From positions 64,477 through 128,476 of the forward strand of contig NIVC01002960.1 in NCBI GenBank assembly GCA_002269645.1: 64,000 bases of DNA, in the 5' to 3' direction. The stretch comes from Macrostomum lignano (lineage: Eukaryota). Both the position numbers and the translations under genes were made by a program. How positions within the stretch are numbered: position 1 is the stretch's first letter; each line of letters starts with the position of its first letter. Shown piece by piece: positions 1,150 through 63,879 of the stretch. The notes below the pieces were generated by a model, which saw nothing but the letters and a program-made list of their open reading frames with translations, was not told the origin of the DNA and did not search any database.

Positions 1150-1334
1150 TGTCATGACTTATGGGGTGGGGCCGCGTGGTAGGGGTGGAGCTTGTTTAGT
1201 AAGCCTAGCTAGCAGTACGTACGGTAATGTACATGCGCGGGCCACCGTGCCCCTTGGCCTATAAAATATACAGAGCGTGGAGGGTTTTGCCTCAACTGAG
1301 TTTACTCCAGAATAAGCGAATTGACTTCATTACA
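1150..1334 (+). repeat. 5' LTR
   Basis: Direct repeat of 5257-5441; contains TATAAAA. Confidence 0.97.
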
Positions 1335-1347
1335 ATTGGCGACGAGA

Positions 1348-4300
1348 ATGGCTTCAGTTGGACAACTAGAGCCTTACGAGGAAGGCAAAGATTGGGACGC
1401 CTATCAAGAGCGAATGGACTCTTACATGCTTGCAAACGGCATAGAAGGCGACGAAAAGAAGAAGGCAGTGTTTCTGACATTGATTGGCGAACGATGCTAC
1501 GCAGTCCTGCGGGATCTCTGCAGTCCGACCAAGCCAACAGATCTACAATACAGCGCCCTCACCGAGCACCTTCAAAAGCACTTCAAACCGAAGAAGCCAG
1601 TAATCGCTGAACGGTTCAAGTTCTACAAGCGGGCACAAAAGGACGGAGAGACGGCTGCTCAATTTCTGGCTGCGCTGCGGAATCTGGCCGATTCGTGCGA
1701 GTTCGGGGGTTTCGAGAAGAAGCTCTCCGAGACTGTTTCGTCTGCGGTCTTCGGGACCAGCGGACCCAGCAGCGACTCCTGATGGAGGAGAAGCTCACGC
1801 TGGATGCGGCCAAGAAAATTGCCCTCGCGGCGGAGATTGCTAAGTCGGAAACGGAGCAGTGGAAATCGAGCTCAGACGTCAGCTCAGTCCAGCAGGTAGC
1901 GCCAGACTCGAAGGCGTGCTACAGGTGCGGATTGAAAGGCCACCTGTCGGCAGCCTGCCACTTCAGGACCGCAAAGTGCCACAACTGCGGGAAAGTTGGA
2001 CACCTGCAGAAAGTTTGCCGCTCAGCCAAGAAAGCCTCCAGAACAACGAAAGCCGGACGGCCAGAGAACGGACCAGCGCACGCAATGCAAACGGAAGAGG
2101 AGGAGGAAGCAGCAACTGGCTGGATTTCGCAAGTCACTGCATCGGCCAAGAAGATCAGCGTAAGCCTGCTGGTGAATGACCAGCCCCTCACCATGCAGCT
2201 GGACACCGGTGCCTGCGTCAGCCTCGTACCGGAGTCGGTGTGGAAGCAGCTCGGCCGACCTCCGCTGACACCAACACGCCTGCGACTCCGGACCTGGACG
2301 GGCGAGCCAATACAAGTCAAGGGAACAGCCGAGGTCAGGGTCAACTACGACGGAAGACAGCATGATAAGCTGCCGCTGGTGGTCACCAGTCAGACCGGAG
2401 CCTGCCCATTGCTAGGACGCAATTGGCTGGAAAAAGTGCGACTCAACTGGACTCAGTTGTTTGCCAACCAGATCAGCCAGGCGCCGGCGCAGAACAGCGG
2501 GCCTCTCGACCAGATGCTGGAGGAGTTCGCTGATGTTTTCGACGAGAGCCTGGGGCAGTTGAAGGATCAGACAGTCGCACTGAGACTTAAAAGTGACGCA
2601 CAGCCTCGATTCTGCAAGGCCAGACCCGTGCCATTCGCAGTGCGGGACAAGCTTGAGCTCGAGCTCCAGGACATGCTCAACAAAGGGATCATCCGCCCGG
2701 TGTCCTACAGTGAGTGGGCTACGCCAGTGGTTCCGGTACTCAAGGCGGACGGCTCAGTCCGACTGTGCGGCGACTATAAACTGACGTTGAACCCTCAGCT
2801 CCACATCGACCAGTACCCGCTGCCTACGCCTGAAGAGCTTTACGAGCAGATGGGACGGGGTCAGCTGTTCTCAAAACTCGATCTGTCACAATGTTATCTT
2901 CAGTTTCCACTCGACGAAGAGAGCTGCAAGCTGACGACCATCAACACGCATAAAGGGCTTTTCGAGTACCTCCGGTTGCCATTTGGCGTCAGTTCGGCTC
3001 CTGCGATTTGCCAGAGGCTGATGGAAACACTTTTGAAGGGCGTGCCGGGAGTCTGTTGTCGCATTGATGACATCCTGGTCTCCGGTCCGTCAATGAGTGA
3101 GCACCTAGCAGCGCTTCGAGAGGTACTGACCAGGCTGAGAGCGGCGGGCTTGCGGCTGAAGCGAATCAAGTGCAAATTTCTGCAAGAAGAAGTCGAATAC
3201 CTGGGCTCGTTGCTGAGCAAGGACGGAGTCAAGAAGCTGCCTCAGAAGGTGGAAGCAATAGTCAACAGCCCGAAGCCAGCGACAGTATCAGAGCTGCGAT
3301 CATTCTTGGGCCTCGCAAACTACTATGCTCGACATGTCAAGGACTTCTCCACGATCGCTGCTCCTCTGTATCAACTGTTGAGGAAGGAGACGGACTGGCG
3401 GTGGGCTGAGACGGAGGACCGAGCCTGGGACCATCTTAAGAAAGAACTGAGTTCGGACAGCGTGCTGACGCATTTCAACGAGCAGCTTCCAGTGGTGGTG
3501 GCCGCGGATGCTTCATCGGTCGGCATCGGCGCGGTGCTGTCCCACACGATGGAGGACGGCTCGGAACGGCCGGTGACTTTTGCTTCAAGGACGCTGTCAG
3601 CAGCGGAGCGAAATTACTCGCAAATTGAGAAAGAAGCCCTCGCCATCGTGTTCGCCATCAAGCGGTTCCACCAGTACCTGTTCGGCCGGAGCTTCACGAT
3701 AATTACGGATCATCAGCCGTTGACGACGATTTTCGGACCGAAGGTTGGCATCTCGCCGACTGCAGCAGGGCGACTTCAGAGATGGGCACTGCTGCTGTCA
3801 GGGTACAGCTACAGCATCCGGTTCCGCAAGACTGCTCAGCACAGCAACGCAGACGGCCTGTCTCGCTTGCCCCTGCAGATGAAGGACGACAACCCAGACG
3901 ACGACGATCGGGTCTGTCAGCTGACGGGCGAGTTTCCATTGACGGCGGCGGATGTAGCGGCAGCAACGAAGCGGGATGACGAGCTCCGAGATGTTCTCCG
4001 GATGATAATGACTGGCTGGCCAGAGTCGGTTCCGCCGCGGCTCGAGCCCTACTTTCGTCGTCGACTAGAACTAAGCGTGGAAGACGGCTGCGTGATCTGG
4101 GGAACTCGCGTGCTGGTTCCGGAAGCGTTGCGACCTGGAGTTCTGCGCGAGTTACACGTGGAACATTTCGGCATGGCCCGGATGAAAAGTGTCGCCAGAA
4201 CCTTCGTCTGGTGGCCAGGAATGGATTCTGACATCGAGTCGGTTGCCAGCAGCTGCCAAGCCTGCCAATCCGTTAAGCTGCATCCGGTGCTGGCTCCACT

Positions 4301-5224
4301 GCACCCCTGGGTGTGGCCAGACCAGCCCTGGGACCGCATCCACGTTGACTTTGCCGGGCCGGTTCGAGGCCGCCAGTTTCTCCTCGTAGTCGACGCGCAC
4401 TCAAAGTGGCCGCATGTGGAGGCCGTGTCAACACTCGAATCGGCCGAGCTGGTTCGCAAGCTGCGAGTGTTGTTTGCACAATGGGGCCGCCGAGAGAACT
4501 GGTATCGGACAACGGTCCAGCATTCATCAGTCAAGGATTTAGCGATTTATGCAAAGCAAATGGAATTCGCCACACAAGAAGCAGTCCATATCACGCCAAG
4601 ACCAACGGACTGGTGGAACGGCTGGTGAAGTCGTTCAAGATGGCCATGGAGGCGTCACGGAGCAGTCAGCCGGACCTCGACATCCGCCTGTGCAACTGGC
4701 TGCTGGGCTACCGAGCTAGCCCGCACCCAACGACCGGTCGGACACCAGCGGAGCTCTTCCTGAAGCGGCAGCTCCGGACTCGAATGGACCTGCTGCGGCC
4801 GTCAGCCCGGGATCGAGTACTGCGGGAGCAATCTGCCCAGAAACGACAGCACGACCGGCGGTCGCGGGAGCTGCCGGAGGAGCCGTGGTCGGAGGCCTGG
4901 GCCAGGGACTACCGGCCTAATGCGGCGGCCTGGCAACCAGCAAAAGTTCTCGAGCAGACTGGGCCGCTGAGCTTCCGAGTCGAAACGAGCGACGGCCTGA
5001 CCTGGCGCCGTCATGCCGACCAACTGCGGGGCCGGCGAGTTGAGAGCGACAAACCTGACGGTCCGGCAGCCGGGACCGAGCCAGCTGAAGCTGCGGACTC
5101 GACCGGGACCGGCGCGGAGCACCCGGAGCCGGAGCCGCCAGACGCGCCCTGCGGACTGCAGCCTGCACGCCGGCGACGGCCACCTGAGAAGCTGACCTAC
5201 TCGAAACTCGGGAGCTGTGATTGA
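1348..5224 (+). CDS. Gag-Pol polyprotein in three frames, joined by two -1 shifts (about 1705-1713 and 4483-4486)
   Basis: Gag N-terminus (LEPYEEGKDWDAYQERM), two CCHC knuckles (CYRCGLKGHLSAAC, CHNCGKVGHLQKVC), protease LDTGA, RT (LCGDYK, LPFG, RIDDILV), RNase H (DASSVGIGAVL, NYSQIEKEALAI), integrase HHCC and DDE (DFAGP, SDNGP, NGLVER). Confidence 0.93.
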
Positions 5225-5905: not shown

Positions 5906-8900
5906 TCAGGTCAGGATGTCGGACAGAGACTGGAACTTTGGTCCCCAGGCGTCCAGCGTCGGTCTCAAGTCGATGGAGCTGTCCGTGTCGGCCGACACCA
6001 GGCTCACCTGATCCAGGTCGGCCGCGTCGTCGTCCCGCGTGTCCTCGTAGCCGTAGTTCAGCGTCTCGTCACCAGCGGCTGCGTCCGGGGCTCCTGGTTG
6101 ACGCTGTCTGGCGCCACAGGCTGGGTGGGCGGCACGCCAATCGGACGCTCCGGGTCGGCTGGAGCGCGGGCTGCAGCTTTTGGGGGTGTTTGTTGGTTGG
6201 TTGGTTGATTGGTTGGTTGGTTGGTTGGTTGGATGGTTGGTTGGTTGGATGGTTGGTTGGTTGGATGGTTGGTTGGTTGGTTGGTTGGTTGGTTGATTGG
6301 TTGGTTGGTTGGTTGGTTGATTGGTTGGTTGGTTGGTTGTTTGGTTGGTTGGTTGGTTGGTTGGTTGGTTGGTTGGTTGATTGGTTGGTTGGTTGGTTGG
6401 TTGGATGGTTGGTTGGTTGGATGGTTGGTTGGTTGGTTGGTTGGTTGGTTGATTGGTTGGTTGGTTGGTTGGTTGGTTGGTTGGTTGGTTGATTGGTTGG
6501 TTGGTTGGTTGTTTGGTTGGTTGGTTGGTTGGTTGGTTGGTTGGTTGGTTGGTTGGTTGGTTGGTTGGTTGGTTGGTTGGTTGGTTAAATGGTTGGTTGT
6601 TTGGTTGGTTGGTTGGTTGGTTCGTTCGTTCGTTCGTTCGTTTGTTGGTTGGTTGTTTGGTTGGTTGGTTGGTTGATTGGTTAATTGGTTGGTTGGTTGG
6701 TTGGTTGGTTGGTTGGTTGGTTGGTTGGTTGGTTGGTTGGTTAAATGGTTGGTTGGTTGGTTGGTTGGTTAAATGGTTGGTTGTTTGGTTGGTTGGTTGG
6801 TTGGTTCGTTCGTTCGTTCGTTCGTTTGTTGGTTGGTTGTTTGGTTGGTTGGTTGGTTGATTGGTTGATTGGTTGGTTGGTTGGTTGGTTGGTTGGTTGG
6901 TTGGTTGGTTGGTTGGTTGGTTGGTTGGTTGGTTGGTTGGTTGTTTGGTTGGTTGGTTGGTTGGTTCGTTCGTTTGTTGGTTGGTTGTTTGGTTGGTTGG
7001 TTGGTTGATTGGTTGATTGGTTGGTTGGTTGGTTGGTTGGTTGGTTTTTTTTTGGTTGGATAGTCTTTTGTCATTTTGCTTCCTGTCAGTGCGGCTTCCC
7101 AGTGCTGAAGCTCTTAGTTGAAGAATGGAACCAGTTTCATCTGGCAATAAAGCATGTTGGAAACTTACAAGGCGCCGATGAATGAACCGGTTGAAAGTTC
7201 GGCAGGCCTCCGTTGCTGTCCTTCTGAGCGGGTGGAAATTGCAGACTCAGCGGTCCTTTGTAGTCCTCGGGAGCTGAAGTAAAGTGAGTCTGATCAGTGA
7301 CTCTTGGCGCTTAGAGTGAAACAGCAATGGTTGGTGGGTCAGAAGATTTACTCACGGACGCCGTCATTTCCGGTGTCATCTCCCATGTCCTGGTTTATCT
7401 GCTCGATGTCGCTCTTAGGAGCCTCGGACCCCCTTTGCTTTCGTGACCGCTTTACAAATGCAAGGAGAATCAACAGGACGATGATGAAGAAAACCACGAT
7501 GGCAATGATGAGCCACACCCACCACTGCACCGCGGCAGTGGAAGGTGCTGGTGTGTTTTCGCCGCCAACTCGGCACATGCGGCTGGTGACCCCCGGCGGG
7601 CAGATGCACTCGAATCCCAGGTTGACGCCCGTCGCCCGGCACGACCCGCCGCTCGGGCAGCTGATGTTGAACTTGCTGCACGGGTTCACGGCAACGCAGC
7701 TCTTGCCCGCGTCTCTCTCCTGTCCTGCTGGACACTCGCAGGTCATCTTGCCCCAGAGTCTCCGACAGACTTCCATTGATGGACAGTCGCAGGGAGGCGT
7801 CAGGTCCACACCGTCGGGACCGACTCTGGCATCGCTGGCCAGCACTGGCGTGATGAAGCCACTTGTCGCCTCATTGATAGACCGATCTGCAGCATCCGTA
7901 GTTGTAGACATGTACGTGCCGGAGACGCGGATGTTCCGCAGCCAGCCTGAGCGAATTCAGTGGAGAGGTGCTAATTGGTTCAATCAAGGTAGGAAACTGA
8001 CACACTGGCACAGACATTGACTTACTGCTGGCGATCTGGGCCGTCAAGTCCAAATTCGAGAGGTCGGCCACGGTTCGGCCCAGGTCGTGCAGCCTGTCGA
8101 CCCCGTCAACTCTCAGCTTGAGCACGGCTTGCCTGGTGGCGGCAAACACGGAGTGCCACTCGCCATCGTCGACTCTGATTGGCGGAAACGCGAAGCAGCT
8201 GGACGAGTCGATGCAGAGCTGCAGCAAGCCGTCCGAAATCTGGAGTCAGGGGAGGAAAATATTTGTATAAATTGAAGTTATGAGCTTCTTGGCTTCAGTT
8301 TAAAAAATTTCAGCTCACATCCAAGCTCTGACTCAGAACGGTTGAACGTGCCGAATTCTTGATTACAGCATGCAGGACGCCAGTCGATGCACTGACTCGA
8401 GTTCGCAGCTCCAACTCGATGGATACGGAATTTTTATCGCTTAATGGTAGCGAATTGTTCGGGTTCTCGAACCAGATGCTCGTATTGTTTGATGCGGTGC
8501 TGATTATCAGCGGATCTGCAGTCGAAACGTTTTCAAAATTCAGGCTTTCTAAGAAAACCTTTCGTCTAATGTAGGAAATGTCTCACCTTTGGTGCACGCA
8601 TTCCAGGTTTCGTTTCTCTTGCATAATTCGCTGCCAATAATTGTCTCTACCATTTTTCTCTTCGACCCAAGGCATTCGCAGTTGCAGTCCATCGGAGCTG
8701 AGGGATCGTTCTTGATGACCCCGTAGCACACCGACTGCGCTCCACAGACGTACGGGCGGCTGGACCGCGCACCAGCCGAACCCGTGCATGTTTCGTTCTG
8801 TAGCCCACAGAAAGCTCCTATCGTGGCGCCTCCACCTTGCGTGACTTCCCTGCCAGCCGCCATGTCTATCAGGTAGCCGTTCACCCGAACTGACTGCACG

Positions 8901-10565
8901 CAGCCAGAGAGCGCTCTTCCGATATCGAGCCATAAATTAGGAAAGTCGCTAACTGGACTGCCTGCACTGATGTTTTGAGAAGAGCATTCAAGTGGTTGCA
9001 CACTGGCTGAAGTTGGCAGCTTTTTAGGGCAGACCACCATCCTGCTCTGAAAACGATTGGGTACCTATTCAGCTTCTGTCAAATATGAATATATCCCAGT
9101 ACATATTGTCCAATCAGAACGTCTCTTACCAGTTCAGATTTCACTGATACATGGACAGCGAACCAGCTGCCGCTGTTTTGCTGAGGTAGGTCAACGCTAA
9201 TAGAATCTCCTCCCAGTAAACTTCCAGCCACTCTGAGCTCTGTCTTCCTGTAGACAAACGTTGCGCTGAGCAATGAGTTATGGGGGTCGGCCGAGCTCTT
9301 CAAGACTACGGCGTCCTGGTTTTCTTGCTGGATAGTTCCGGAAAGTTCAAATGAGATTTCCAGAGACTGAACCGAGTGCGGCAGGCTGCCAATCCAGTGG
9401 CGAGTGAAGGCCAGACCGGATGACCCGTGGCTGTAGCTTCTGACCGGGTACTCGCATCGAGGACCCCACGGGATGTTCGCGACAGACGGGCAGATGCACC
9501 TGCAGAGGGTGAAAAGTTTTTGTAGGTCTGTTGATGACATCGCTGCTTTTAAATGATGTCATACTTTGCTTTGCCGTAGCTCAGATGGCCGAAATGGCAC
9601 AGATGGCACACAACTTGCCTGGATCCGACACCAGTAAAGTTGGCATCGCATACTCCGTCGTTCAGGCAAGTGGCCGGCCCGCACGGCTCTGCGCTCATCT
9701 GCTCGGCTGTCTGAGCCGTCCAGCTCAGCCCGAATCCCAGGAAGTTCGAGTCGCTGTTGAGCTGCACCACAGCCGGATGCACCGATGGAAGCGAGCTGCT
9801 CGAAAAGCGCAGGCGACTGCGGCACAGCTGAGCGGACTCAGCGGGACACCGATCCGGCATCACCTGGACTCCGCTACTCGCTTCAGTTTCGTTCTTCACC
9901 AGCTCGTACGCCTCCCAGAGGGCCAAGTAGGAGCTGGTGCTGGCCTTCGGTATGAGCAGGGACACCTCTGAGGTGTCGGCGGCCGGCTGCAGCTGAGAGA
10001 CGAGGCGAGCCGACAGCCGACTCTTGAGTCTGGCCACCAGACTGTTGATGTCGTTCGTTCGACCTGCGGGAATTGAGCGGGCAGTTCTTGTGTGTAGGGG
10101 AATCAACAGGTCATGCCAAGCTCCGACAATACTCACCTGAAATGAATATTGCATTGTCGAGCACGCTCAGGGGCAGCCGGGAGACTGTGACACTGAGCTG
10201 GTGAATGGCGGTGCCGATGGTCACCTGGACTAGGTGTGTGCCACCTGGCAGGTCGGCCTTGAACACAATCCTGTTTGGCACGGAGCTCCTGTCAACATCG
10301 AACTTGTCTGGCACCAGCCCGCTGCTCACGCTGTCGATAAGGTCCGAGCCGCTGATTGTCATGTAGGCGAAGCTGTACTTTGTGAAGTCCGCATCTGAGA
10401 AATGATTTAAACAGTTTGATCAGCAATCCATAGCCATGGCGTCTCACCCATGTCCCGCAAGTGCAACTCACCGTCCGGCAGCCGGACTTCAACGCTGGCC
10501 GAGTCGCAGAGGCCGCCAGTGGCCAAAGCCAGCAGAATGAGGGCTGCAGAGCTGCACCGAAGCAT
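5906..10565 (-). CDS. Classical-cadherin-like protein without canonical cadherin repeats (SP, degenerate EC-like/NC, EGF, LamG, EGF, LamG, 2 EGF, TM, cadherin cytoplasmic domain), about 990 aa
   Basis: Exons 10565-10472, 10394-10137, 10063-9619, 9499-9130, 9064-8587, 8515-8319, 8239-8026, 7946-7356, 7273-7169, and a last exon ending at 5906 (acceptor 6120 or 6170, uncertain). Phases are continuous. Signal peptide [20 protein letters not shown]; LamG end motif [11 protein letters not shown]; [26 protein letters not shown]; C-terminus YGYED...[16 protein letters not shown] resembles the catenin-binding WGPRFxxLAD motif. Confidence 0.85.
6190..7058. repeat. (TTGG)n microsatellite, most likely in the last cadherin intron
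   Basis: Direct reading; includes TTCG and TTGA variant units. Confidence 0.97.
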
Positions 10566-13843: not shown

Positions 13844-15078
13844 ATGCCGCTGGCGGCTCTCTGGAGTTGCCGTGGCTCCAAAAAGCGGCAGCGGAAAGAG
13901 CAGCAGCAGCAACATGGAGGCAAGGATCCCACTGCCACCTCCCGCGAGGCTGAGGTACCCGAGGATGTCGACTTGACCGAAGCTCTGGCCGACGAAGAGA
14001 TCGCCGAGTGCGTGCAGACTTTCAACACATTCGACTACGACAACGACGGACGCATAAGCATGAAGGAGCTTGGCAACATCCTGCGCTGCCTTGGATACGG
14101 CTGCTCTCGGGCAGAGCTCAAGGTGAACTATCTTGGTATATAGTTGACAATATTCCTAGAGCCGCAAGGAATACTATGGTAGTCTCTAGGTGAGACAAGT
14201 CTAAACTCTACAGAGCCTTACCTGCCGAGCGTTCCTCCAGACCACAGAATTGTCCAGACAGAATCCTCCAGACCACAGAATTGTCCAGACAGAATCCTCC
14301 AGACCACAGAATTGTCCAGACAGAATCCTCCAGATCACAGAATTGTCCAGACAGAATCCTCCAGACCACAGAATTGTCCAGACAGAATCCTCCAGACCAC
14401 AGAATTGTCCAGACAGAATCCTCCAGATCACAGAATTGTCCAGACAGAATCCTCCAGACCATATCCAGACCAGATTCCGGATTCCACTGGAACAATTTAT
14501 GTCCTTGATTAGCTGGGGTATTTGAGGCTGTGTGTGGGACCCCCCTGACCATGGACTGAACAGCCGTACGCAGCCTTCAGATGCGCCGCTTCAGCTGCGG
14601 CTGATCTGTCGGTTGCACATCTGGCCCAATCGGAGCTGGTGTAATCAGTTATTATTATATTACTGGGTTGCAGAATTCACTGCAGAGGTCTCTGGATGTT
14701 TTTGAGTGGTAAGAATTCCCGCAAAACTCGAAACTTGGGCCTCAGAGTGCAGCCCTGCTCCCGCAGGAGATGTTCGCCGGCATTGACAAGAACGGAAACG
14801 GCTTCATTGACCTGCAGGAGTTCCTCGGCCTCGTGGGCCTCGGGCAGCTTCGCCACCGGCAGCAGACGGACCGCCAGCTGGCGAAGGCCTTCCGAGTCTT
14901 CGACGCCGACCGAGACGGCTTCATTGGCCCGGCGGAGCTGCGGGCTGCCCTGCGCCGCCTGTTGAAGCCCGCTGAGGTCACCGACCGACTGGTGGACGAC
15001 ATGATTCGCGGCGCTGACCGTGACGGCGACGGACGCGTCTCCTTTGCCGAGTTCGTCGGCATCGTCAGCCCGCGGTAG
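13844..15078 (+). CDS. Calmodulin-like protein with 4 EF-hands and an N-terminal extension, 196 aa
   Basis: Exons 13844-14122 (AAG|GTGAAC) and 14767-15078 (CCGCAG|GAG). EF loops DYDNDGRISMKE, DKNGNGFIDLQE, DADRDGFIGPAE, DRDGDGRVSFAE. Confidence 0.92.
14233..14465. repeat. 31-bp minisatellite in the calmodulin-like intron
   Basis: About 7 units of CAGAATCCTCCAGACCACAGAATTGTCCAGA. Confidence 0.95.
14475..14662 (+). mobile_element. SINE family A, copy 2 (5'-truncated, internally deleted)
   Basis: Shares CCACTGGAACAATTT and GGACTGAACAGCCGTACGCAGCCTTCAGATGCGCCGC with the other copies; TTA tail. Confidence 0.75.
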
Positions 15079-15892: not shown

Positions 15893-17374
15893 ATGCGAGC
15901 AAGTCAAGCAGTCACCGTCGCTCACATCGCGGTGCTGCTGACGATGCGCTGCTGCCTGAAGGTTATGGAGTACCAGTTCATCACACTGGCCGCAGCAAGC
16001 TCCAATGCCAGCACCGCCACCGAGGGAGTGGCGGAGTCGGCCTCGCCGATGTCCTGGATGTACACCTGCCGCTTTTTGCTAGGCGCTCTGGGCGGCCTGG
16101 TGGCCTGCTGGATCGGCCACGTGCGCACCCTGCAGCTGGGCGGCTGCGTCCTGCTGGCATCGGCTGGCGCCATGGCCGGCGCCGTGTACACCGACCAGTG
16201 GCGCCCGGACTCCGGCGCCGCGCTGACCGCCTGCGCCCTCATGCTGGTCTACAACGGCCTGGTGATCCCCAACGTGATGTACGCAGTGCTGAGCAAGCGG
16301 ACGAGGCCGCAGCGCCGCACGGTGCTCTGCGCGCTCGTCTACATGTCCTCCGCGGCCGGCCTGTTTGTGGGCATCCAGGTGCAGCACCTGCTGACCAACC
16401 CGAGCGTTGGCAAACACTGCAGCCTTGTCTGGCTGGCCTTCGCCCTCGCCTTTGCCGCGCTCGCCTTCCTAGCGCTGCCGCGGCTCGACGGAGCAGCCGC
16501 GATGGCACCGAGCTCCGGGCAGCTCGACACGGCTCCGCCGCCGCCGTTTTCGAAGCTGCTGTGCGACTGCGGGCACGTCCTGCTGCCGACTTGGAGCCGT
16601 CTGAAGCGCAGCTGCATTGTCTTCGGGACGCTGATCCCCTTCCTGGTGGGTCTGTGCGATGACCGGTCCTCGGCCTTCAACGCGCAGCGGGCGCTGCAGC
16701 CGCTCATCGCCAACTCCAGCGGAGGTAACTCCGGAAATGACCGATTGAGCGATTCGCTGGATAGTGCGCTGCTGGCAGTCAGCCTGGTGGCCGTCAACGG
16801 AGGTCTGATGGTCGCCGCCTGCTGCCTGCGCGGTCGCAGACGTCTCCCAGTGCAGCCGCGGCTCCTGGCGGGCATCGTCATGGAGGCGGCCCTGGAGCTG
16901 GCGCTGGCGGCAGTCAGTGGCGTTGGGCTGGCCGACCCTGTGGCCGTGTCCGCGCTGTACACCGCTTCTACAGTGGTGGACGCGACCGCCGCCGCGCTGA
17001 CGATGGTGGCCGCCTACGAGCTGATGGACAGCTTTGAGCGGGACGCCGCAATGCCACTGATTTTCGGCATCATGCTGACTGTGTGGGGTCTCGCGAACCT
17101 GGCCAGCCGCTGTATTGTCACGATCTGCCGCCGCCTGCCGCCCGACAACCCGATCCTGCAGCCGAGCGCCGGCAAGCCGCCTCTGCTGTTCGTCTACCAC
17201 TCGCTGCTGCTGGCGCTGCTGCTGCTGAGCCTCGCCTTCTGGCGGCTGTTCGCCCTGCGGCTTGCCCGCTCGCTGCAGGTTATATATGAGGACGAGGTGC
17301 CAGAAGCTTCCGCCGGCCCCGTCAACGATAGCGACGGGGAGAACCGGCCGCTGCTGGACCCCGCCATCAACTGA
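15893..17374 (+). CDS. Intronless multi-pass MFS-fold transporter, divergent SLC15/POT(PTR2)-like, 493 aa
   Basis: Long GC-biased ORF with 11-12 hydrophobic segments. Segments LGALGGLVACWIGHVRTL, IPFLVGLCDDRSSAFNAQ and MPLIFGIMLTVWGLANL resemble POT-family motifs as recalled. The family call is tentative. Confidence 0.75.
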   Translation: MRASQAVTVAHIAVLLTMRCCLKVMEYQFITLAAASSNASTATEGVAESASPMSWMYTCRFLLGALGGLVACWIGHVRTLQLGGCVLLASAGAMAGAVYTDQWRPDSGAALTACALMLVYNGLVIPNVMYAVLSKRTRPQRRTVLCALVYMSSAAGLFVGIQVQHLLTNPSVGKHCSLVWLAFALAFAALAFLALPRLDGAAAMAPSSGQLDTAPPPPFSKLLCDCGHVLLPTWSRLKRSCIVFGTLIPFLVGLCDDRSSAFNAQRALQPLIANSSGGNSGNDRLSDSLDSALLAVSLVAVNGGLMVAACCLRGRRRLPVQPRLLAGIVMEAALELALAAVSGVGLADPVAVSALYTASTVVDATAAALTMVAAYELMDSFERDAAMPLIFGIMLTVWGLANLASRCIVTICRRLPPDNPILQPSAGKPPLLFVYHSLLLALLLLSLAFWRLFALRLARSLQVIYEDEVPEASAGPVNDSDGENRPLLDPAIN

Positions 17375-17837: not shown

Positions 17838-20800
17838 TCAGATGCGTTTCGCTGCATATCTCCGCGGCGTTGAGCGCTGAGCTCCTGACGATCGTCGAGA
17901 CTGCGTTCGACGCCGCAACAGAAACACAAGAGCCACCACGATGAGGATGAGCACCATGACTCCGATGCTTACGATCAGCCAGACCCACCAGTTGACTCCG
18001 GCAGAGGTGAAAACTGTTCTGGCTTCACTGCTACTCCTGCACATGGTGACCCCCGGCGGGCAGATGCACTCGAATCCCAGGTTGACGCCCGTCGCCCGGC
18101 ACGACCCGCCGCTCGGGCAGCTGATGTTGAACTTGCTGCACGGGTTCACGGCAACGCAGCTCTTGCCCGCGTCTCTCTCCTGTCCTGCTGGACACTCGCA
18201 GGTCATCTTGCCCCAGAGTCTGCGACAGACTTCCGTTGACGGACAGTCGCAGGGAGGCGTCAGGTCCACACCGTCGGAACCGACTCTGGCATCGCTGGCC
18301 AGCACTGGCGTGATGAAGCCCCCTGTGGCCTCATTGATAGACCGATCTGCAGCATCCGTAGTTGTAGACATGTACGTGCCGGAGACGCGGATGTTCCGCA
18401 GCCAGCCTGAGCGAATTCAGTGGAGAGGTGCTAATTGGTTAAACCAAGGTAGGAAACTGACACACTGGCACAGGCACTGACTTACTGTTGGCGATCTGAG
18501 CCGTCAAGTCCAAATTCGAGAGGTCGGCCACGGTTCGGCCCAGGTCGTGCAGCCTGTCGACCCCGTCAACTCTCAGCTTGAGCACGGCTTGCCTGGTGGC
18601 GGCAAACACGGAGTGCCACTCGCCATCGTCGACTCTGATTGGCGGAAACGCGAAGCAGCTGGACGAGTCGATGCAGAGCTGCAGCAAGCCGTCCGAAATC
18701 TGGAGTCAGGGGAGGAAAATATTTGTATAAATTGAAGTTATGAGCTTCTTGGCTTCAGTTTGATAAATTCAGCTCACATCCAAGCTCTGACTCAGAACGG
18801 TTGAACGTGCCGAATTCTTGATGGTGGCATGCAGGACGCCAGTCGATGCACTGACTCGAGTTCGCAGTTCCAACTCAATCGATACGGAGTTTTTATCGCT
18901 TAACTGTAGCGGATTCTTCGGGTTCTCGAACCAAGTGCTTGGATTGCTTGATGCGGTGCTGATTATCAGTGGATCTGCAATTTCAATCAGTTCACTGAAG
19001 TTCAAGTGGGGGTTGTAGCCAGTGGGGGTTGTAGCCAGTGGGGGTTGTAGCCAGTGGGGGTTGTAGCCAGTGGGGGTTGTAGCCAGTGGGGGTTGTGGCC
19101 AGTGGGGGTTGTAGCCAGTGGGGGTTGTAGCCAGTGGGGGTTGTAGCCAGTGGGGGTTGTAGCCAGTGGGGGTTGTAGCCAATGGGGGTTGTGGCCAGTG
19201 GGGGTTGTGGCCAGTGGGGGGTTGTAGCCTAGTACTTAGAGCGTCAGACTCACGACTTGAAGGTCGGGGGTTCGATCCCCGATCCCACTGGAACAATTTG
19301 TGTCCTTGAGCAAGACACTTAACTCTGCATTGCTTCAGTTCACCCAGCTGTAAAATGGGTGCCAGCAATAGCTGGGGTAATTGAAGGCGTGTGGTGACCC
19401 CCCAGTCCTTGGACTGAACAGCCGTACGCAGCCTTCAGATGCGCCGCGCAATAGCTGCTACTGAGCTGTCGGTTGCACATCTGGCCCAATTGGGGCAGGT
19501 GTAACCAATTATATTATTATTATTGTTTACTGAAGTTCAGCTTTGGGTTATCAAGCTATGTGTGAATTCCAAACTCGTCTTACCTTGTGTGCACTCGTTG
19601 GACTGCCGATCTTTCCTGCACTCGGCACTGGAGCCGACCGTCTCAAGCTTCTTTCGCTTCGATCCCAGGCACTGGCAGTTGCAGTCCATCGGATATCCTT
19701 TGCTTTTAGTCACGATCCCATAGCAGACCGACTGCGCTCCGCACACGAATGTGCCGGAGCCGCCGCAGCTGCCGCTTTGAAACTTGCAGTCGTCTTCCAC
19801 CTTGGAGTCCCCGGTTGTCACGGCCCTGCTGGCCTTCGCGTCCACCAAATAGCCGTTCACGGTGACTGATTGCACGCAGCCAGTGAGCGCCTGGCCGATC
19901 TCAAGCCAGAGGTTGGTAAAGTCCGAGACCGAACCACCAGAATTGACGCTCTTGGTCTGGCACTCAAGCGGAATTGGATTGCTTGAGACGCCTGCGAGCT
20001 TCTTTGGGCACAGAACTGCCCGAGTCTGCAATTGGTTGCCAAGTTGGTTCAGCTTTGGTTGATAAGCCGCAGCATGCGAGATTTATCCCAGAAACTCTCA
20101 CCAGCTTTGGAGTCATGAGAATGTGAAAAGTGAACCAGTTCCCTTGGTTAAGGCCTGCAGATGATACATCAAAGCTTTTTCCAAGAAGCAGACTTCCGGC
20201 CACTCTGAGTGTTGTAGTCCGGAAGATCAGCGATGCACTGAGCATTGAACTGCCTGGATTGTTGGGACTCTTCAGCGCCAGCGTCTCGAGGCCGGCTTTT
20301 TCGATTGATCCGGACAGCTCAAATGAGATTTCCAGAGACAGAGCCGAGTGCGGCAGGCCGCCAATCCAGTGGCGAGTGAAGGCCAGACCGGATGACCCGT
20401 GGCTGTAGCTTCTGACCGGGTACTCGCATCGAGGACCCCACGGGGTGTTCGGCGCTAACGGACAGATGCACCTGCAGATTGGCAGAACTTTTTAATCCGG
20501 CTTTGCCAACAGATGCAACTAGCAATCTAGTGCCCCCTTCGGGGCGTCCAATAGCAAGAAACGAAAAGTATTTATGAGAACCTTTTAAAACGAATGCATT
20601 TCTCTTAAAAGCATTCCTATTTCAGTTTAATAAATCACTTTGTTCGAGTAAATTTTTCCCAGTAAGCCTTGACATCTCAGCAATTCCCCAGTAAGCCTTG
20701 ACATCTCAGCAATTCCCCCAGTAAGCCTTGACATCTCAGCAATTCCCCAGTAAGCCTTGACATCTCAGCAATTCCCCAGTAAGCCTTGACATCTCAGCAA

Positions 20801-23207
20801 TTCCCCCAGTAAGCCTTGACATCTCAGCAATTCCCCCAGTAAGCCTTGACATCTCAGCAATTCCCCCAGTAAGCCTTGACATCTCAGCAATTCCCCCAGT
20901 AAGCCTTGACATCTCAGCAATTCCCCAGTAAGCCTTGACATCTCAGCAATTCCCCCAGTAAGCCTTGACATCTCAGCAATTCCCCCAGTAAGCCTTGACA
21001 TCTCAGCAATTCCCCCAGTAAGCCTTGACATCTCAGCAATTCCCCCAGTAAGCCTTGACATCTCAGCAATTCCCCCAGTAAGCCTTGACATCTCAGCAAT
21101 TCCCCCAGTAAGCCTTGACATCTCAGCAATTCCCCAGTAAGCCTTGACATCTCAGCAATTCCCCCCTACATATCAGAGACAGCAATGAGAAGGGATATAC
21201 GCTATCAACTTGGAAAGCTTATCGGCACCTGCGTCAATACTCCGGCATAATGTTTTCGAGACTTCTCTTTGAAAAGCTGAAAAATAACATTCGTGCAGAA
21301 AATCTAAGAAAGCGGGCAGAACAGTCTTTAGCCACGCCTGTGCTTGAGAGCCGCCTGAATTCACCTGAACCCGAAGCCAGTGAAGTTGGCATCGCAGACT
21401 CCGCCGTTCAGGCAAGTGGCCGGCCCGCACGGCTCTGCGCTCATCTGCTCCGCTGTCTGAGCCGTCCAGCTCAGCCCGAATCCCAGGAAGTTCGAGTCGC
21501 TGTTGAGCTGCACCACAGCCGGATGCACCGATGGAAGCGAGCTGCTCGAAAAGCGCAGGCGACTGCGGCACAGCTGAGCGGACTCAGCGGGACACCGGTC
21601 CGGCATCACCTGGACTCCGCTACTCGCTCCAGTTTCGGTCTTCACCAGCTCGTACGCCTCCCAGAGGGCCAAGTAGGAGCTGGTGCCGACCTTCGGTATG
21701 AGCAGGGACACCTCTGAGGTGTCGGCGGCCGGCTGCAGCTGAGAGACGAGGCGAGCCGACAGCCGACTCTTGAGTCTGGCCACCAGACTGCTGATGGGGT
21801 CTCGAGAACCTGTTTAATAATAGGCAAGCAGTGCGGGTGCCGATAATCGAGTTTGAAAATTAGCATTAGCTATTTATACTGGCAGCTCCATACCAGCAAT
21901 GAAGATGGCGCTGTCAATGACGCTCAGTGGCAGGCTGGAGACTCGCAAATTCAACTGATGAGATACAGTTCCAGCTTTCACCTGCACCACGTGTACGCCA
22001 TTCTTTAGGTCGGGAGGCCTGAGCACGAGTCTGTTGGGTGTGGAGCTCTTGTCAACGGTGAACTTGGTCGCAACGTCGCCTGCGCCGATCACTCTGTCCA
22101 TCCTGTCTACGCTCGATATTCTCAGGTAGGCGGCGCCGTACTTTCTGAAGTTGGCATCTGCGCGTTGACGGAGAGGGAGCGCAACGTTTTGATTTGTTTT
22201 AGCTGGTCGCACGGTTGCACAAAAAGTAATTAAGGGTGGGATGTGGGCACCCTGGATCAATGCTTCCGGTAAAATCGTCCCACAACCAGCGGTGGGGCGA
22301 TTCTTCCCATTGCACTGACCTCCTGAGCACGCGCTGTGCTGTCCCAAGTGGATCAGGCGAGGGGAGAGGGGGACATGTTCAGTAAAGGCTATGGGGGGAC
22401 ATGCCAATGCGTTGTCCCCCCACCCGACCTCCTGACCCGTTGTGTGCGGCGCTAAAAATAGTGCCTGCGGAGCTAAAGGGAATGCCTGCGGCGCTAAATG
22501 AGTGCCTGCGGCGCCAAAATGACTTCCTGCGGCGCCTAAATGAGTACCTGCAGCGCCAAAATGAGTGCCTGCGGCGCCTAAATGAGTGCCTGCGGCGCCT
22601 AAATGAGTGCCTGCGGCGCCTAAATGAGTGCCTTTGGCGCCAAAATGAGTACCTGCAGCGCCTAAATGAGTACCTGCGGCGCCTAAATGAGTACCTGCGG
22701 CGCCAAAATGAGTGCCTACGGCGCCAAAATGAGTGCCTGCGCAGCTAAAAGGAATGCCTGCGGCGCCAAAATGAGTGCCTGCGGCTCCAAAATGAGTGCC
22801 TGCGGAGCTAAAAGGAATGCCTGTGGCGCCAAAATGAGCGCTGACAACACCGATTCTCAAAATATGAGTAATGGACATTGTGGAATTTGGTCATGTATAT
22901 GTACATGTTGAATTCTTGGCTTCATCCCCCCACCTTAAAATCCATGGCGACGCCCCTGATGTGGATACTGCACGCAGGCGCGCTCTCATAGACACGCTTC
23001 CACAGGGTGTACAGCAGACCTCACTTCTTAATCGTCAGGCGTGTGCACTCTCTGCGCCCGAGGGATTGGCCCTCAAAGATGTGTACGTTCAACAGGAGGC
23101 TGGCACTCACCATCTGGCAGCAAGACTTCAACTTCAGCTTTGTCGCAGTAGGCACTGGCGAGCACCGCCAGCAGGATGGCTGCAACTGCAGGCCCGTACC
23201 GGAGCAT
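17838..23207 (-). CDS. Tandem paralog of the cadherin-repeat-less cadherin, with a short non-cadherin tail, 874 aa
   Basis: Exons 23207-23111, 22157-21894, 21809-21365, 20471-20102, 20052-19584, 18974-18778, 18699-18486, 18406-17838 sum to 2625 nt, in frame. Intron positions match copy 1. Signal peptide MLRYGPAVAAILLAVLASAYC; TM followed by RRRTQ...YAAKRI-stop; AATAAA on the minus strand at 17778-17783. Confidence 0.85.
19005..19215. repeat. 16-bp minisatellite AGTGGGGGTTGTAGCC derived from the SINE 5' end
   Basis: About 13 units running directly into the SINE head GGGGGTTGTAGCCTAG. Confidence 0.9.
19216..19524 (+). mobile_element. SINE family A, copy 3 (most complete), in intron 5 of cadherin paralog 2
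   Basis: tRNA-like head, B-box GGTTCGATCCC at 19269-19279, CORE-like block at 19297-19359, (TTA)n tail. TSD GTT[C/T]ACTGAAGTTCA at 18990-19004 and 19525-19539. Confidence 0.85.
20657..21168. repeat. 29-30 bp minisatellite in intron 3 of paralog 2
   Basis: About 17 units of CCCCCAGTAAGCCTTGACATCTCAGCAATT. Confidence 0.95.
22445..22840. repeat. 21-bp minisatellite in intron 1 of paralog 2
   Basis: Units like GCGGCGCCTAAATGAGTGCCT. Confidence 0.9.
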
Positions 23208-23759
23208 GGCTGAGTCAGACTGGGCTTCGACCTAGGATGCTCTGCTCTCAGCTTGAATCAGCAGAGCAGCTCTCGGTCGGCTGGGCAGTTCATTTTAAGG
23301 TTGCGACTCGCGCGGCCCGGCAGTGACAGGCGCGCAATTTTCCGCATAATTTGCTAGCAACGCCTGCGGCCCGGCTGAAGCTGGCAAGACCTCGGTAACC
23401 CGGTTAAGCTGTCTCTATTAATATTCAATTTGTTTGCAATTACGCAGCACATTAAGAAACGTAATTTTATCAGATATTTTCTCGAATTAGCATTTCCACA
23501 ATGCCTTACGCTTGTAACCGCACCTGCTCAGACCCCACAGGTAAATCATTGCGAAGTTCTTCTACGAGCGCATGTGCGTATTTTTAACAGAAAGGGATCG
23601 AAGTTTTATCCCCATTGCGTTGAAAAGTCGCATTGATTTTGTCTGTAGGACCGAGAGTTACGCGCGATTTCACGTCTGCAGTTGCTGGCGACGAGCTACG
23701 AGAGTAACTGCAACTGCCTGTCTGTACCAATTTAGTGAACCTAATTGGTCACACAATTC

Positions 23760-60183: not shown

Positions 60184-61719
60184 CTCAGCGGCCGGTCGCC
60201 AACCGAAGCTTGCTGCGAACTCGCAGCCGCAAGTGCGGCGGACACTGCGGAACAAAAAAGCAAGACACCACGGAGAGAGTTCGGGAAGAGAAACCTGATC
60301 CCCTAGGATGCGGGAGTGCCAGACCGGCCGGGAGGCGGCACGAGCTGCTGCTGGATTATGAATGCAGCTCCCCAGCCTGCAGCAGCTTTGCAGTTTCCAC
60401 AACTTGGCTTGCCAAGGCCTGGAAGTCAGCGCTGGGCCGCCTCATCAGGCTGGCGCCCTCCCACTACTAATCTCCTTCATTATCGCCCCGCTCTGTCCGA
60501 CGCGGGAGACTTAAGGCGCCTGGGATCAAAATATCCATCCATTTCTTCTTTTCCCTTACCCCATCCCAGTCCGGCTCCTCTGGCCTCTCTACCCCCTTCC
60601 TCAGATTGAAATCCGTGGAGTCGCGCCAGCCAGAGGCTGCCGTGGTGTCGTGAAATTAGTGTCAATTATGGCGGCGGGTATCGGGAGGCTCCGAGAGGGG
60701 TGGGTTGGGGAGGGGATTTTTCGCCCTCACGCTCTCTCACTCCCTCTGGGGGGGGGGCAAAAGTACCCGGCTGGTTGCTTGGCGCAGCTGAGACAGCTCG
60801 TCCATATTCGCTTAAGCCTCAGCCTAGGAAAAGTAATTTTGTTGTTTTTTGTTTGCTTTCTTTTCTGGAGCCCGAGAGAGCACACGTTGGTACTCAAGAA
60901 GTCGCGAATGGCTCTCCATTCGCGGTGGCAGAACCTGCTTCCCTTTCAGTCTCATTGCTGCAAGGCTCCAAAAGCAAACAGCGGCATTTTTCTTTTGGGT
61001 CAAGCAGCGAATCAGACAGATTCGTCCTCACGGCTCAGTGTCCTTTCTGGGTTATCTTGAATGCAACCAGCAAGAGAAAATGCAAAATGATGAAGCGTCA
61101 AGATAAGAACGGTATGGCAGGCCTCAGATAAATTTCAAGAATTAGGTAGGTAGGTCACACTACCAAAGCTCTACCAAAGTCAAACCGCATTGTCGTCACG
61201 CGTCTTCTGGCACTGTTCCAGGTCTCTGCATGCGCCAGGGCGACACGCATCGGCTGCTTTCTACAGTCAGGGGCTCAGCTTCCTCTGCGATGGAGCGCGA
61301 CTCGCTGTTCCAAAGCCCGCAACACCGAGGCAGCCCAGTGGAAGTGAAGCCCGGGATGAGCCTATCCTATCTGACAAGTCGCCAACACCGCCCTCAGACC
61401 TTCGCAGAGAACTTTGGGTGCGCGCGAATTCCCAATGAGCGCCAGGGACTTCCGTCATTGGCTGCTAGCGGCGATCCCCCAGCCAGTCTGCACTAAACTT
61501 CCTCTCCGTGTCTCTCGTATTCCATTTCCGAAAGTTCCCTCGCTGACAGCATAGAACTGAGACCAGGACCGAAAAGTCCGACATTACCAACTGTAAGCAG
61601 AAGCCCCAGCATTGCTCAGCCACAATTGAAACTGCGCTCACTGCAGAAGCAACGGTGCAGGAGCGACACACTCCGCTCAGCCTGGTGCTACACTGGCTTG
61701 GAACTCGAGCCGTGCCGAA

Positions 61720-63879
61720 ATGTCCAACCAGACACAGCAGCTGAAACAGGGTCGCAGCAGCGGTGGCGGCGATCACAGCAGCCCCTGTGTCCCCGGCTCG
61801 ACCTCCTTCAGCGATTGTCTGCAGCCTAGGTCACCCACCTCAGCTCAGCAGATCGGCCAGATGGTGCTCGCGTTCTCCAAGCGGTCGACCATCCACGGCC
61901 TCAATCACATCGCGCAGGCCAGAAGCGCCAGGCGGCGAATCTTCTGGATGCTGATTTTCAGCGCGGCGAGCTGCGGCTTCCTCACGAATCTGTATCACAT
62001 CGCCGTGAAGTACATTCAAGTACCGGTGCTCACTAACGTCAAGCACGACCACTTGTCGTTCAAGTTTCCGGACATAACAGTCTGCAACATAAACCCGATT
62101 TTCTTTCCACCGAAGAACTCGCAGCACTACGAAGACTTATTGAGAGTCATTAAGCAATACGACCAGGATAAAAAAATCTACAAGCAGCGAGCAGCAAAGC
62201 TGAAGAACTGGAAAAGGGGCGTCTTCACTAGCGTCATAAACGGCGTGTACATATCGGACTACCTGTACATGCAGAGAAACATCACCTTGTACAGCATCCC
62301 GCACGAGATATTTGTGCAAGACTGCAGGTACATGGGCACTCACAAGGACAGCTGCTCGAGCTCCTGGATCACGCACCGTCGCTGGCCGTACGGAGCCTGC
62401 TATCAGCTCAACATCACCAAGCTGGGCCGCGACGCCATCAGCCGATCCAACAAGAAGGCCTTCAGCAGCGGCTTCCGGCCCGACCTGTTCCTCCTGCTGT
62501 ACAAAGGAGTCGAGTACCCGGACGAGTTCAAGTACCTGGACGCACACGGTCTCATCGGAATGCCCAGTGGGGTGCTTCTGATGCTGCACGAACCCGGGAC
62601 TTATCCGCAAATTGGCGAGAGCTTCCTACTCGACAAGTACGCCCAGGTTGACCTTCACATGACCCGCAAGCAGCACCTGCGCAAGCTGAAGTTGTGCGAG
62701 TCGCACAGAGACATTTACGATTATGTGGATGTTGAAACTGGCGAGAGACGCTTCTACAAAGAGACGCGCACCGACTGCGTGGAGAACATCACGCAGACTG
62801 CCATCAAGCAGCAGTGCAAGTGCGTCGGCCACGAATACCCGCTAAAGTATGACGACGAAAAATATCCGTTCTGTCGGGATTTCAAGTGGTTCGACCAGCA
62901 CTTTAACGACAGCGATTGCGCCAATCGAATGCACCGTCAGGTAAAGGAGGCGAACCCGTTGAAGATGTGCTACAAAGACCTGTGCGAGCACACCACCTAC
63001 TCAACTGTGATCAGTCAGGCTAATTTTCCAGCCGTGATTGAGCGCAAAACGCACCGCGGTTGGCTGAGACTGCTGAGCATGATGGAACGCGATGAGCTAA
63101 AAAAGTACGGAACGACAGACCTGGCATCCAAGGCCCTGAAACTCGATAGCACGACAGAGCCGATGAACATCTCAGAGGTGCTGACGAACGGCCAGTTTGA
63201 GCTTCTCAACGTAGATTTCGTGGAAAGAAATTTCATGTACTGCGGATCGTTCCATCGTCTCTGTTTGCTGACGAGATGCTCGAGACGAGGAGTACCCGCT
63301 GAGCCGCTTCCTCACTGACGTCGGCGGCTGCGTCGGCCTGTGGGTTGGCGCTTCTCTCATCACCGTGTTCGAGTTCTGCGACCTGCTGCTCGACTTTCTG
63401 GGACTGGACGCCATCTTCCGGCGCAAGCGCTCGGTTCGCAGAATGGACACTACTATGGCCAGCTGCGGCGGGCGCTGTCCCCTCACGAGGAGGTCACTCG
63501 GCTGGTTGAGTACAACCGCAGGACGCCGCTACCGCCGCCGCCGTCGCCGCAGATGACGCGAAACTCGCCGGCTGACATAAATTCGGCTAAAGGAGGGCAG
63601 GACGACGAGGCGGGCAGCAACAGCGTGGCGACGGCAGCGGGCGGCGGCGACAGAGAACAGGCTGAACAGCGGCATCACAATGTCGGCCTCCACCCTGAGC
63701 TGCAGCTCGGCGGCGGCGACCCGGTGAAGCGGCCCGCGGGCGGTGCAGATCGGCATGGTGTCCAGTGTGTAGCGATCGCTGTATCAAATTTTAAGAATCG
63801 AAGTCTTTCGCGACTTTATTTCGCCCCGCCTCCCGCTTCCCTGCTTGCTTCCCGTTGCCCCAGCACCAAATACCTGTAA
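61720..63879 (+). CDS. DEG/ENaC-family ion channel subunit with three apparent -1 frameshifts (about 63240, 63286, 63433)
   Basis: STIHGL (HG motif), RIFW TM1, FPDITVCNINP, Cys-rich thumb, and after the shifts YPLSRFLTDVGGCVGLWVGASLITVFEFCDLL (TM2 with GAS filter). No intron seen. The C-terminal end is uncertain. Confidence 0.9.

Follow-up and report, generated by a model that had tools for sequence, protein, structure and literature searches.

The window analysed here is a stretch of 64,000 nucleotides (nt) from the flatworm Macrostomum lignano (contig NIVC01002960.1, positions 64,477 to 128,476) with ~55% G+C, spliced genes and many minisatellites. Read as reverse complement, window positions 33207-7838 agree with NIVC01002960.1:72314-97683 (assembly GCA_002269645.1, Mlig_3_7) without a mismatch in the 25,370 bases compared. 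Two paralogous genes of the minus strand are the subject of this study, gene B (Mlig019320) at 23207-17838 and gene A (Mlig000582) at 5906-10565, 7.3 kb downstream of B. The transcripts of both begin just ahead of the signal peptide, and neither gene encodes extracellular cadherin (EC) repeats. A continues past the membrane into a tail, of which B possesses no counterpart.

Structure of gene B and of its tailed paralogue

Gene B comprises eight exons with a coding sequence of 2,598 nt (865 amino acids, aa), and its introns are GT-AG in every case. The translation corresponds to PAA54150.1 (BOX15_Mlig019320g1, Mlig019320.g1; 'hypothetical protein'), no residue being different. GenBank models of M. 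lignano derive from a genome-guided transcriptome (StringTie/TACO/TBONE) with open reading frames (ORFs) called by TransDecoder and names assigned by 95% clustering (PMC5730564), so Mlig019320 constitutes a transcript cluster of its own, apart from Mlig000582. The predicted protein consists of a signal peptide, an N-terminal domain, laminin-G (LamG) and EGF modules, a transmembrane (TM) helix and a short tail. Exon 1 (23111-23207; minus strand, as all exons and signals of both genes) carries the ATG at 23207, encodes the signal peptide MLRYGPAVAAILLAVLASAYC and ends in a phase-1 donor. Exon 2 (21894-22157) encodes the beta-rich N-terminal domain of 88 residues, with 54.5% aa identity to A. By alignment, exon 3 (21365-21809) contains the end of the DE-cadherin Ig-like (NC) domain and the first EGF. 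The end of an EGF and the first half of LamG 1 are located in exon 4 (20102-20471), the second half of LamG 1 and a Cys-rich segment in exon 5 (19584-20025). LamG 2 starts in exon 6 (18778-18974), has its core in exon 7 (18486-18699; Pfam PF02210 match) and ends in exon 8 (17838-18406), followed by a linker, two EGF-like repeats, the TM helix, the basic tail and the stop codon.

The TM segment of B (~residues 813-840) is encoded by exon 8, and its hydrophobic stretch ends VNWWVWLIVSIGVMVLILIVVALVFLL. The cytoplasmic tail, RRRTQSRRSSGAQRSTPRRYAAKRI (17841-17915), is 25 residues long with ten R/K and no D/E, and ends YAAKRI in front of a TGA stop codon (17840-17838). RRxS/T-like sites and a juxtamembrane basic cluster are visible in the tail. 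A single poly(A) signal (AATAAA, 17783-17778) starts 55 nt past the stop; no other AATAAA or ATTAAA is present downstream of the gene. An earlier reading of these letters without database searches (the sequence-only reading) had described a basic tail of about 25 residues, the AATAAA at this distance and an exon architecture common to A and B through the TM segment, all of which is borne out: exon plan and intron phases are the same in both genes up to exon 8.

Gene A has ten exons, at 10565-10472, 10394-10137, 10063-9619, 9499-9130, 9046-8587, 8515-8319, 8239-8026, 7946-7356, 7273-7169 and 6176-5906. Exons 1-7 measure 97/94, 264/258, 445/445, 370/370, 442/460, 197/197 and 214/214 nt in B/A, and exon 8 comprises 569 nt to the stop in B vs 591 nt to the donor in A. 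The two additional tail exons of A are found in public proteins of other genomic copies (P0001, P0004), the first encoding ...PPEDYKGP...HSSAP. The tail has a cadherin-type C-terminus with a motif starting LNYGYED; its match to the catenin-binding domain PF01049 reaches 19.8 bits, under the curated cut-off of 24. The C-terminus of A is colinear with a sea-star type III cadherin from LamG 2 through EGF, TM and juxtamembrane region to WGPxF (pairwise E=1e-13). The copy of A in the window possesses CCCC at 6090-6087 vs CCCCC in both other genomic copies, which leads to a frameshift and a stop at 6060-6058; PAA54147.1, annotated for this copy, accordingly stops short of the catenin-binding motif. 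The assembly is PacBio-based and Pilon-polished (PMC5730564); the frameshift may be genuine and mark a null allele, or it may be a homopolymer error left over from PacBio sequencing. At the exon 3 donor (9619), A has a GC-AG intron (AG/GCAAGT) in all three copies, B a GT (AG/GTGAAT). Most of the last intron of A is a (GTTG)n microsatellite of 859 nt (6188-7046), and a retrotransposon with long gag-pol-like ORFs, a CCHC zinc knuckle and an integrase-like part lies directly 3' of the gene (1300-5221, plus strand).

Pfam recognises LamG and EGF in the B protein and nothing else. The EC repeat (PF00028) has no match in B, A, P0001 or P0011, a 31%-identical EC-less transcript; the positive control, the neural-cadherin-like protein XP_022110110.1 of Acanthaster planci (P0012), gives 17 matches, besides Ig_Shg, LamG, EGF and a PF01049 match of 90.8 bits. 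A catenin-binding domain (PF01049; WGPxF C-terminus) has no match in B. Isolated exon-2 domains do not match any Pfam family at E<=10, nor do isolated exon-2 and exon-3 segments match a cadherin or Ig_Shg (PF24811) family. An AlphaFold2 (AF2) model of B residues 21-128 is all-beta with a low mean predicted local distance difference test score (pLDDT) of 65.5; Foldseek detects nothing at E<=0.001 for it in the PDB (best E=1.9), so that the domain has no assigned fold and might be a vestige of an EC repeat. A full-length AF2 model from a 4-sequence alignment had a pLDDT of 39.9 and was discarded. PDB sequences yield weak EGF and LamG matches to B at most.

An exhaustive HMMER search among 1.84 billion representatives returns 19 hits only (E<=0.001), none of them from amphioxus. 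Besides P0011, these are membrane-proximal parts of type III 'neural-cadherin-like' proteins from Acanthaster, Ptychodera and Anneissia, and trematode N-cadherin fragments, so that the best EC-bearing matches are echinoderm and hemichordate (ambulacrarian) type III cadherins. A Logan contig (SRR30276812, L007; 2,698 nt, GC-rich) contains a 31%-identical EC-less homologue in an ORF at 109-2502, which ends inside the last EGF without a TM segment; a secreted form, intron retention or mis-assembly are possible. A profile built from A, B and P0011 reaches a hhalign probability of 99.3% against P0012 (E=1e-20, 594 columns, B 172-857 vs 2113-2766) over a block of NC (Ig-like) end, EGF, LamG, EGF, LamG, two EGFs and TM; the 17 cadherin matches of P0012 lie upstream of this block. 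Of the Ig_Shg/NC domain, just the C-terminal part is included in the alignment with B. The EC repeats and catenin-binding domain of classical cadherins are both absent from B, and the membrane-proximal block of type III/IV cadherins with its single TM segment is present. As in EC-less cadherins, the LamG/EGF ectodomain resembles that of type III without EC repeats; a candidate cadherin cytoplasmic domain is present in the intact copies of A and absent from B. This agrees with the sequence-only reading of B as a twin, itself without the catenin-binding region, of an EC-less cadherin-like gene.

In the DNA alignment of exon 8, homology between the paralogues vanishes past the first basic residues (A KRSRKQ, B RRRTQ), and the exon-8 donor of A (C/GTGAGT) has no counterpart in B. 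Transcriptional units of M. lignano can be complex (PMC5730564), and B might have a longer tail through unrecognised downstream exons or alternative splicing. We regard this as very unlikely. From the beginning of exon 8 to ~140 nt beyond the stop, a GTRAG donor-like site occurs just once, within the TM-coding stretch. In the whole 64 kb, tblastn with the cytoplasmic domain of A (E<=100) finds nothing beyond A's own tail, and a six-frame search for WG[PS]xF likewise finds A's tail and no second copy, in line with the sequence-only reading, which saw no tail exon between B and the convergent gene. Stop and AATAAA are conserved in the three genomic copies, the public ORF, derived from transcripts, has this stop too, and two genes of the opposite strand come directly after B. 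The first of these is a convergent ORF of 177 aa (16841-17374, plus strand), a hydrophobic, predicted membrane protein without Pfam match; an EF-hand protein gene (13844-15078, plus strand) follows between this ORF and A. With two opposite-strand genes between them, the paralogues do not form a simple head-to-tail tandem, and their distance is ~25 kb on NIVC01001867 vs 7 kb in the window. A repeat or transposon truncating B at its 3' flank was considered and rejected, the flank sequence being confined to B loci. We infer that B lost its tail either when the gene was duplicated or in a rearrangement soon afterwards, with the break directly behind the stop-transfer residues.

Divergence, gene conversion and maintenance of gene B

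Similarity between A and B is distributed in a mosaic. Protein identity amounts to 89-99% in exons 3 and 6-8, and to 52-61% in the N-terminal domain and exons 4-5. The near-identical membrane-proximal ectodomain of the sequence-only reading is real, and the near-identity does not extend to the ectodomain as a whole. On the nucleotide level, the old parts are exon 2 (69%), intron 2 (62%), exon 4 (75%; 61% aa), exon 5 (66%) and the TM region (73%); the near-identical parts are exon 3 (96-97%) and the region from exon 6 to the ectodomain part of exon 8 (90-99%, with 99% in exon 7), including introns 6 and 7 (95-100%). Synonymous divergence (dS) is 0.92 in exon 2, 0.72 in exon 4 and 1.97 in exon 5, the most diverged exon (52% aa), vs 0.08 in exon 3 and 0.02 in exon 7. 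The high dS of exons 2, 4 and 5 indicates an ancient duplication. Ratios of non-synonymous to synonymous divergence (dN/dS), which average over both lineages, are 0.41, 0.40 and 0.20 in these three exons.

Two conversion tracts can be delimited. The exon-3 tract connects B 21364-21796 with A 9618-10050 (96.8% nt identity) and halts at or before the exon 3 donor boundary of A (9619). The 3' tract, which begins at exon 6, connects B 17938-18979 with A 7478-8520 (92.4% over 1,053 nt) and has both introns within. Its high identity stops at the PPGVT codons, and an older, lower homology continues through the TM segment. Since the near-identity reaches introns and synonymous sites, it points to gene conversion and gives no evidence of selection for a shared surface. 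Exon 7 clusters by contig (A_731 is 99.1% identical to B_731 vs 97.7% to A_win), which indicates that conversion recurred after the three genomic copies diverged. Judged by these alignments, exon 3 and exons 6-8 are homogenised between A and B by recurrent gene conversion, introns included, and the N-terminal domain, LamG 1 with the Cys-rich segment, the TM helix and the tail are diverged, under purifying selection on average between the genes.

The three genomic copies of the locus (NIVC01002960, NIVC01001867 and NIVC01000731) were reached via a neighbouring small gene (P0008). Gene A is present on all three contigs, and so is B, in each case with the intact ORF of 2,598 nt, every splice site, and stop and AATAAA unchanged. 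The B of the window is separated from the copy furthest diverged from it by 20 synonymous and 18 non-synonymous changes (dN/dS 0.29, binomial p=2e-4), and codons outside the conversion tracts give the same ratio between B copies (dN/dS 0.29, p=0.016). Exons of the B copies are 98.5% identical vs 95.3% for the short introns.

About half of the B coding sequence lies in conversion tracts, and only one of the three copies of B is annotated, as might be expected of a decaying, truncated duplicate held open by conversion from A. Such a pseudogene is hardly credible: the unconverted exons, with a dS of 0.7-2.0 from A, are open in all three copies with a pN/pS of 0.29, splice sites are conserved, and a B-specific probe displays a defined expression pattern. 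Relaxed selection, which the sequence-only reading had named among the results that would refute it, is equally at odds with the intact copies, the dN/dS and the transcript-derived model. Gene B is intact and selectively maintained, and is no pseudogene.

Introns 1, 3 and 5 of B (609-953 nt) harbour one minisatellite each, at 22445-22838 (21-nt unit), 20658-21165 (30-nt unit) and 19005-19229 (16-nt unit); the first seven introns of A measure 71-119 nt. Array lengths vary among the three genomic copies. A tRNA-like element is present in intron 5 of B (19218-19287, plus strand; Rfam RF00005, 33.5 bits; not called by ARAGORN), adjoining the 16-mer array, whose unit resembles the 5' end of a tRNA. 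The element may be a tRNA-derived short interspersed nuclear element (SINE) or a decayed tRNA gene that seeded the repeat. Elsewhere in the window, a long open frame at 61630-63315 (plus strand) has, by eye, the look of a DEG/ENaC-type channel. The ORF list, a promoter/terminator scan and ARAGORN were uninformative at this eukaryotic locus.

Expression of gene B and its possible function

Mlig019320.g1 is assigned to the positional class 'Tail', and the in-situ probe RNA815_35951, assigned to this gene, is recorded as 'antrum', i.e. the female genital organ (Brand et al. 2020, PMC7336406, Tables S6 and S11). The primers of this probe are located in the 5' untranslated region of B (forward, 23286-23309, minus strand) and in exon 2 (reverse, 21959-21982). 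The probe region is only ~69% identical to A, which makes RNA815_35951 B-specific. Gene A (Mlig000582.g7, g11) is 'Non-Specific', with hundreds to >1000 reads in every body fragment (PMC7336406). Being expressed along the whole body, A is probably co-expressed with B in the antrum; as B is recorded in one organ and A body-wide, any pairing of the two could operate only there. Literature searches of main texts returned nothing on Mlig019320, Mlig000582 or RNA815_35951, and the supplements searched of other M. lignano papers have no entry for the gene.

From homology and gene structure, we consider it reasonably probable that B, transcribed and functional, encodes a type I membrane protein, that it arose by an old duplication of the EC-less, classical-cadherin-derived A, and that it serves adhesion or recognition in the antrum independently of catenins. 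The duplicate would have retained the whole of its parent as far as the stop-transfer residues, and none of the cytoplasmic domain. On the surface of the antrum epithelium, B would act without catenins and with a binding specificity of its own, which would sit in the diverged N-terminal and LamG 1 modules. The outer modules, 52-61% identical at a dN/dS of 0.2-0.4, look like a separate specificity and not like a copy of that of A. The 25-residue tail with its ten positive charges would probably serve as a membrane anchor, perhaps with a docking or phosphorylation site, and would not link to actin via catenins. B would relate to A as the short-tailed or glycosylphosphatidylinositol (GPI)-anchored cadherins relate to classical cadherins.

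Several points weigh against this reading. The adhesion or recognition role is proposed for B from homology. The antrum entry in Table S11 is given without a literature reference, and its annotation was moved over by blastn (PMC7336406). The tabulated probe length is 446 nt vs 398 nt predicted by the exon 1-2 model in all three copies; the excess of 48 nt might be due to a different 5' structure or to the way in which the length was counted. The end of the B transcript is taken from the public annotation and from the conservation of stop and AATAAA. Conversion from A could by itself keep B open in exons 3 and 6-8, and the dN/dS between A and B is an average over both lineages. Homologue searches yield the M. 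lignano copies and the one 31%-identical transcript, and no orthologue from another Macrostomum.

The same data bear on a decoy function, as put forward in the sequence-only reading, or a dominant-negative one, in which B would present the membrane-proximal surface of A, enter the lateral or trans complexes of A in the antrum and lower actin-coupled adhesion there. Protein identity of 89-99% in exons 3 and 6-8, the missing catenin-binding motif of B and the body-wide expression of A, which is probably present where B is, would all suit such a function, and tail-deleted cadherins can be dominant negative when over-expressed. We nevertheless consider a decoy unlikely. The identity of A and B covers introns and synonymous sites and so reflects conversion and not selection on a shared interface, the distal modules are only 52-61% identical, and the idea is drawn from sequence.

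B might also be an organ-specific receptor separate from the function of A, exposed on the surface of the female tract to, e.g., sperm, ejaculate or egg-shell components, with a tail that signals or anchors via other partners. Expression restricted to antrum and tail, the paralogue-specific divergence of the N-terminal and LamG 1 modules, and the RRxS/T-like sites and juxtamembrane basic cluster, if interpreted as signalling features, speak for a receptor. It has no known ligand, however, and its dN/dS is well under 1, without the rapid evolution typical of reproductive interaction genes; we find this possibility rather improbable. A further suggestion, which we hold to be just as doubtful, combines several of the above elements: flatworms would have evolved an EC-less cadherin independently, and the tail-less duplicate would have been kept as a modulator in the female organ, held in register by conversion so as to join the lateral complexes of its parent and loosen or re-specify antrum junctions. 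If true, junctions could be loosened e.g. for extreme distension at egg passage or for interaction with received sperm, and B would be a natural, genetically encoded dominant negative or co-receptor for an adherens-junction cadherin.

The preferred reading of B as a catenin-independent surface molecule has consequences for the understanding of the family. Classical cadherins are defined by EC repeats on the outside and catenin binding on the inside, with the cadherins of amphioxus as the textbook exception without repeats. The present locus shows a flatworm lineage with an EC reduction of the amphioxus type and, in gene B, a natural paralogue of long standing in which the inside half is gone too, although the gene is conserved and its expression is recorded in one organ. 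Should B bind a partner of any kind, LamG/EGF modules alone would be able to carry adhesion or recognition and neither hallmark of the family would be needed. What catenin coupling adds to adhesion could then be studied conveniently in the A/B pair, as RNA interference, in-situ hybridisation and transgenesis are available in M. lignano, and the mosaic of converted and diverged exons would be a map of the modules likely to carry specificity. Should B prove to be of minor importance at the surface of one organ, a 'hypothetical protein' would still have gained a useful annotation.

Comparison with other cadherins

Type III cadherins, represented by the sea-star protein P0012, share with B the colinear order NC end, EGF, LamG, EGF, LamG, EGF and TM, and A is colinear with them down to the C-terminal WGPxF. 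They differ from the flatworm pair in their EC repeats, which A and B both lack, and in their strong PF01049 match; B is without any cytoplasmic match.

Bb1- and Bb2-cadherin of amphioxus reportedly go back to Oda et al. (2002, 2004). Both are EC-less with LamG/EGF modules shared with type III cadherins, adhesive with distinct specificities, and equipped with catenin-binding tails (PMC3216324). The A/B pair has the same kind of EC-less LamG/EGF ectodomain in type I membrane proteins. In contrast to the amphioxus pair, in which both members keep the conserved catenin-binding domain, the flatworm B does not possess one, and adhesion has been shown for Bb1 and Bb2, whereas A and B are known here from sequence. 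No amphioxus protein is among the 19 significant hits, so the loss of EC repeats in the flatworm lineage is probably independent of that in amphioxus, as judged by these search hits. The searchable literature contains no description of a flatworm EC-less cadherin or of the A/B gene pair.

T-cadherin is a GPI-anchored cadherin. LI-cadherin, one of the 7D-cadherins, has a short cytoplasmic domain and still mediates adhesion (PMC3478510). The 7D-cadherins (LI- and Ksp-cadherin) and T-cadherin have thus lost the catenin-binding tail and function at the cell surface nonetheless, an analogy to B and not an orthology. They bind via EC repeats and Ca2+; B would have to use its LamG/EGF modules or the N-terminal domain.

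Engineered tail-deleted cadherins, which act as dominant negatives when over-expressed, have the topology of B, i.e. an ectodomain and a TM segment without catenin coupling. These constructs are artificial, over-expressed and provided with the ectodomain of their target, whereas B is natural and old as a paralogue, its distal modules have diverged, and it has an expression domain of its own.

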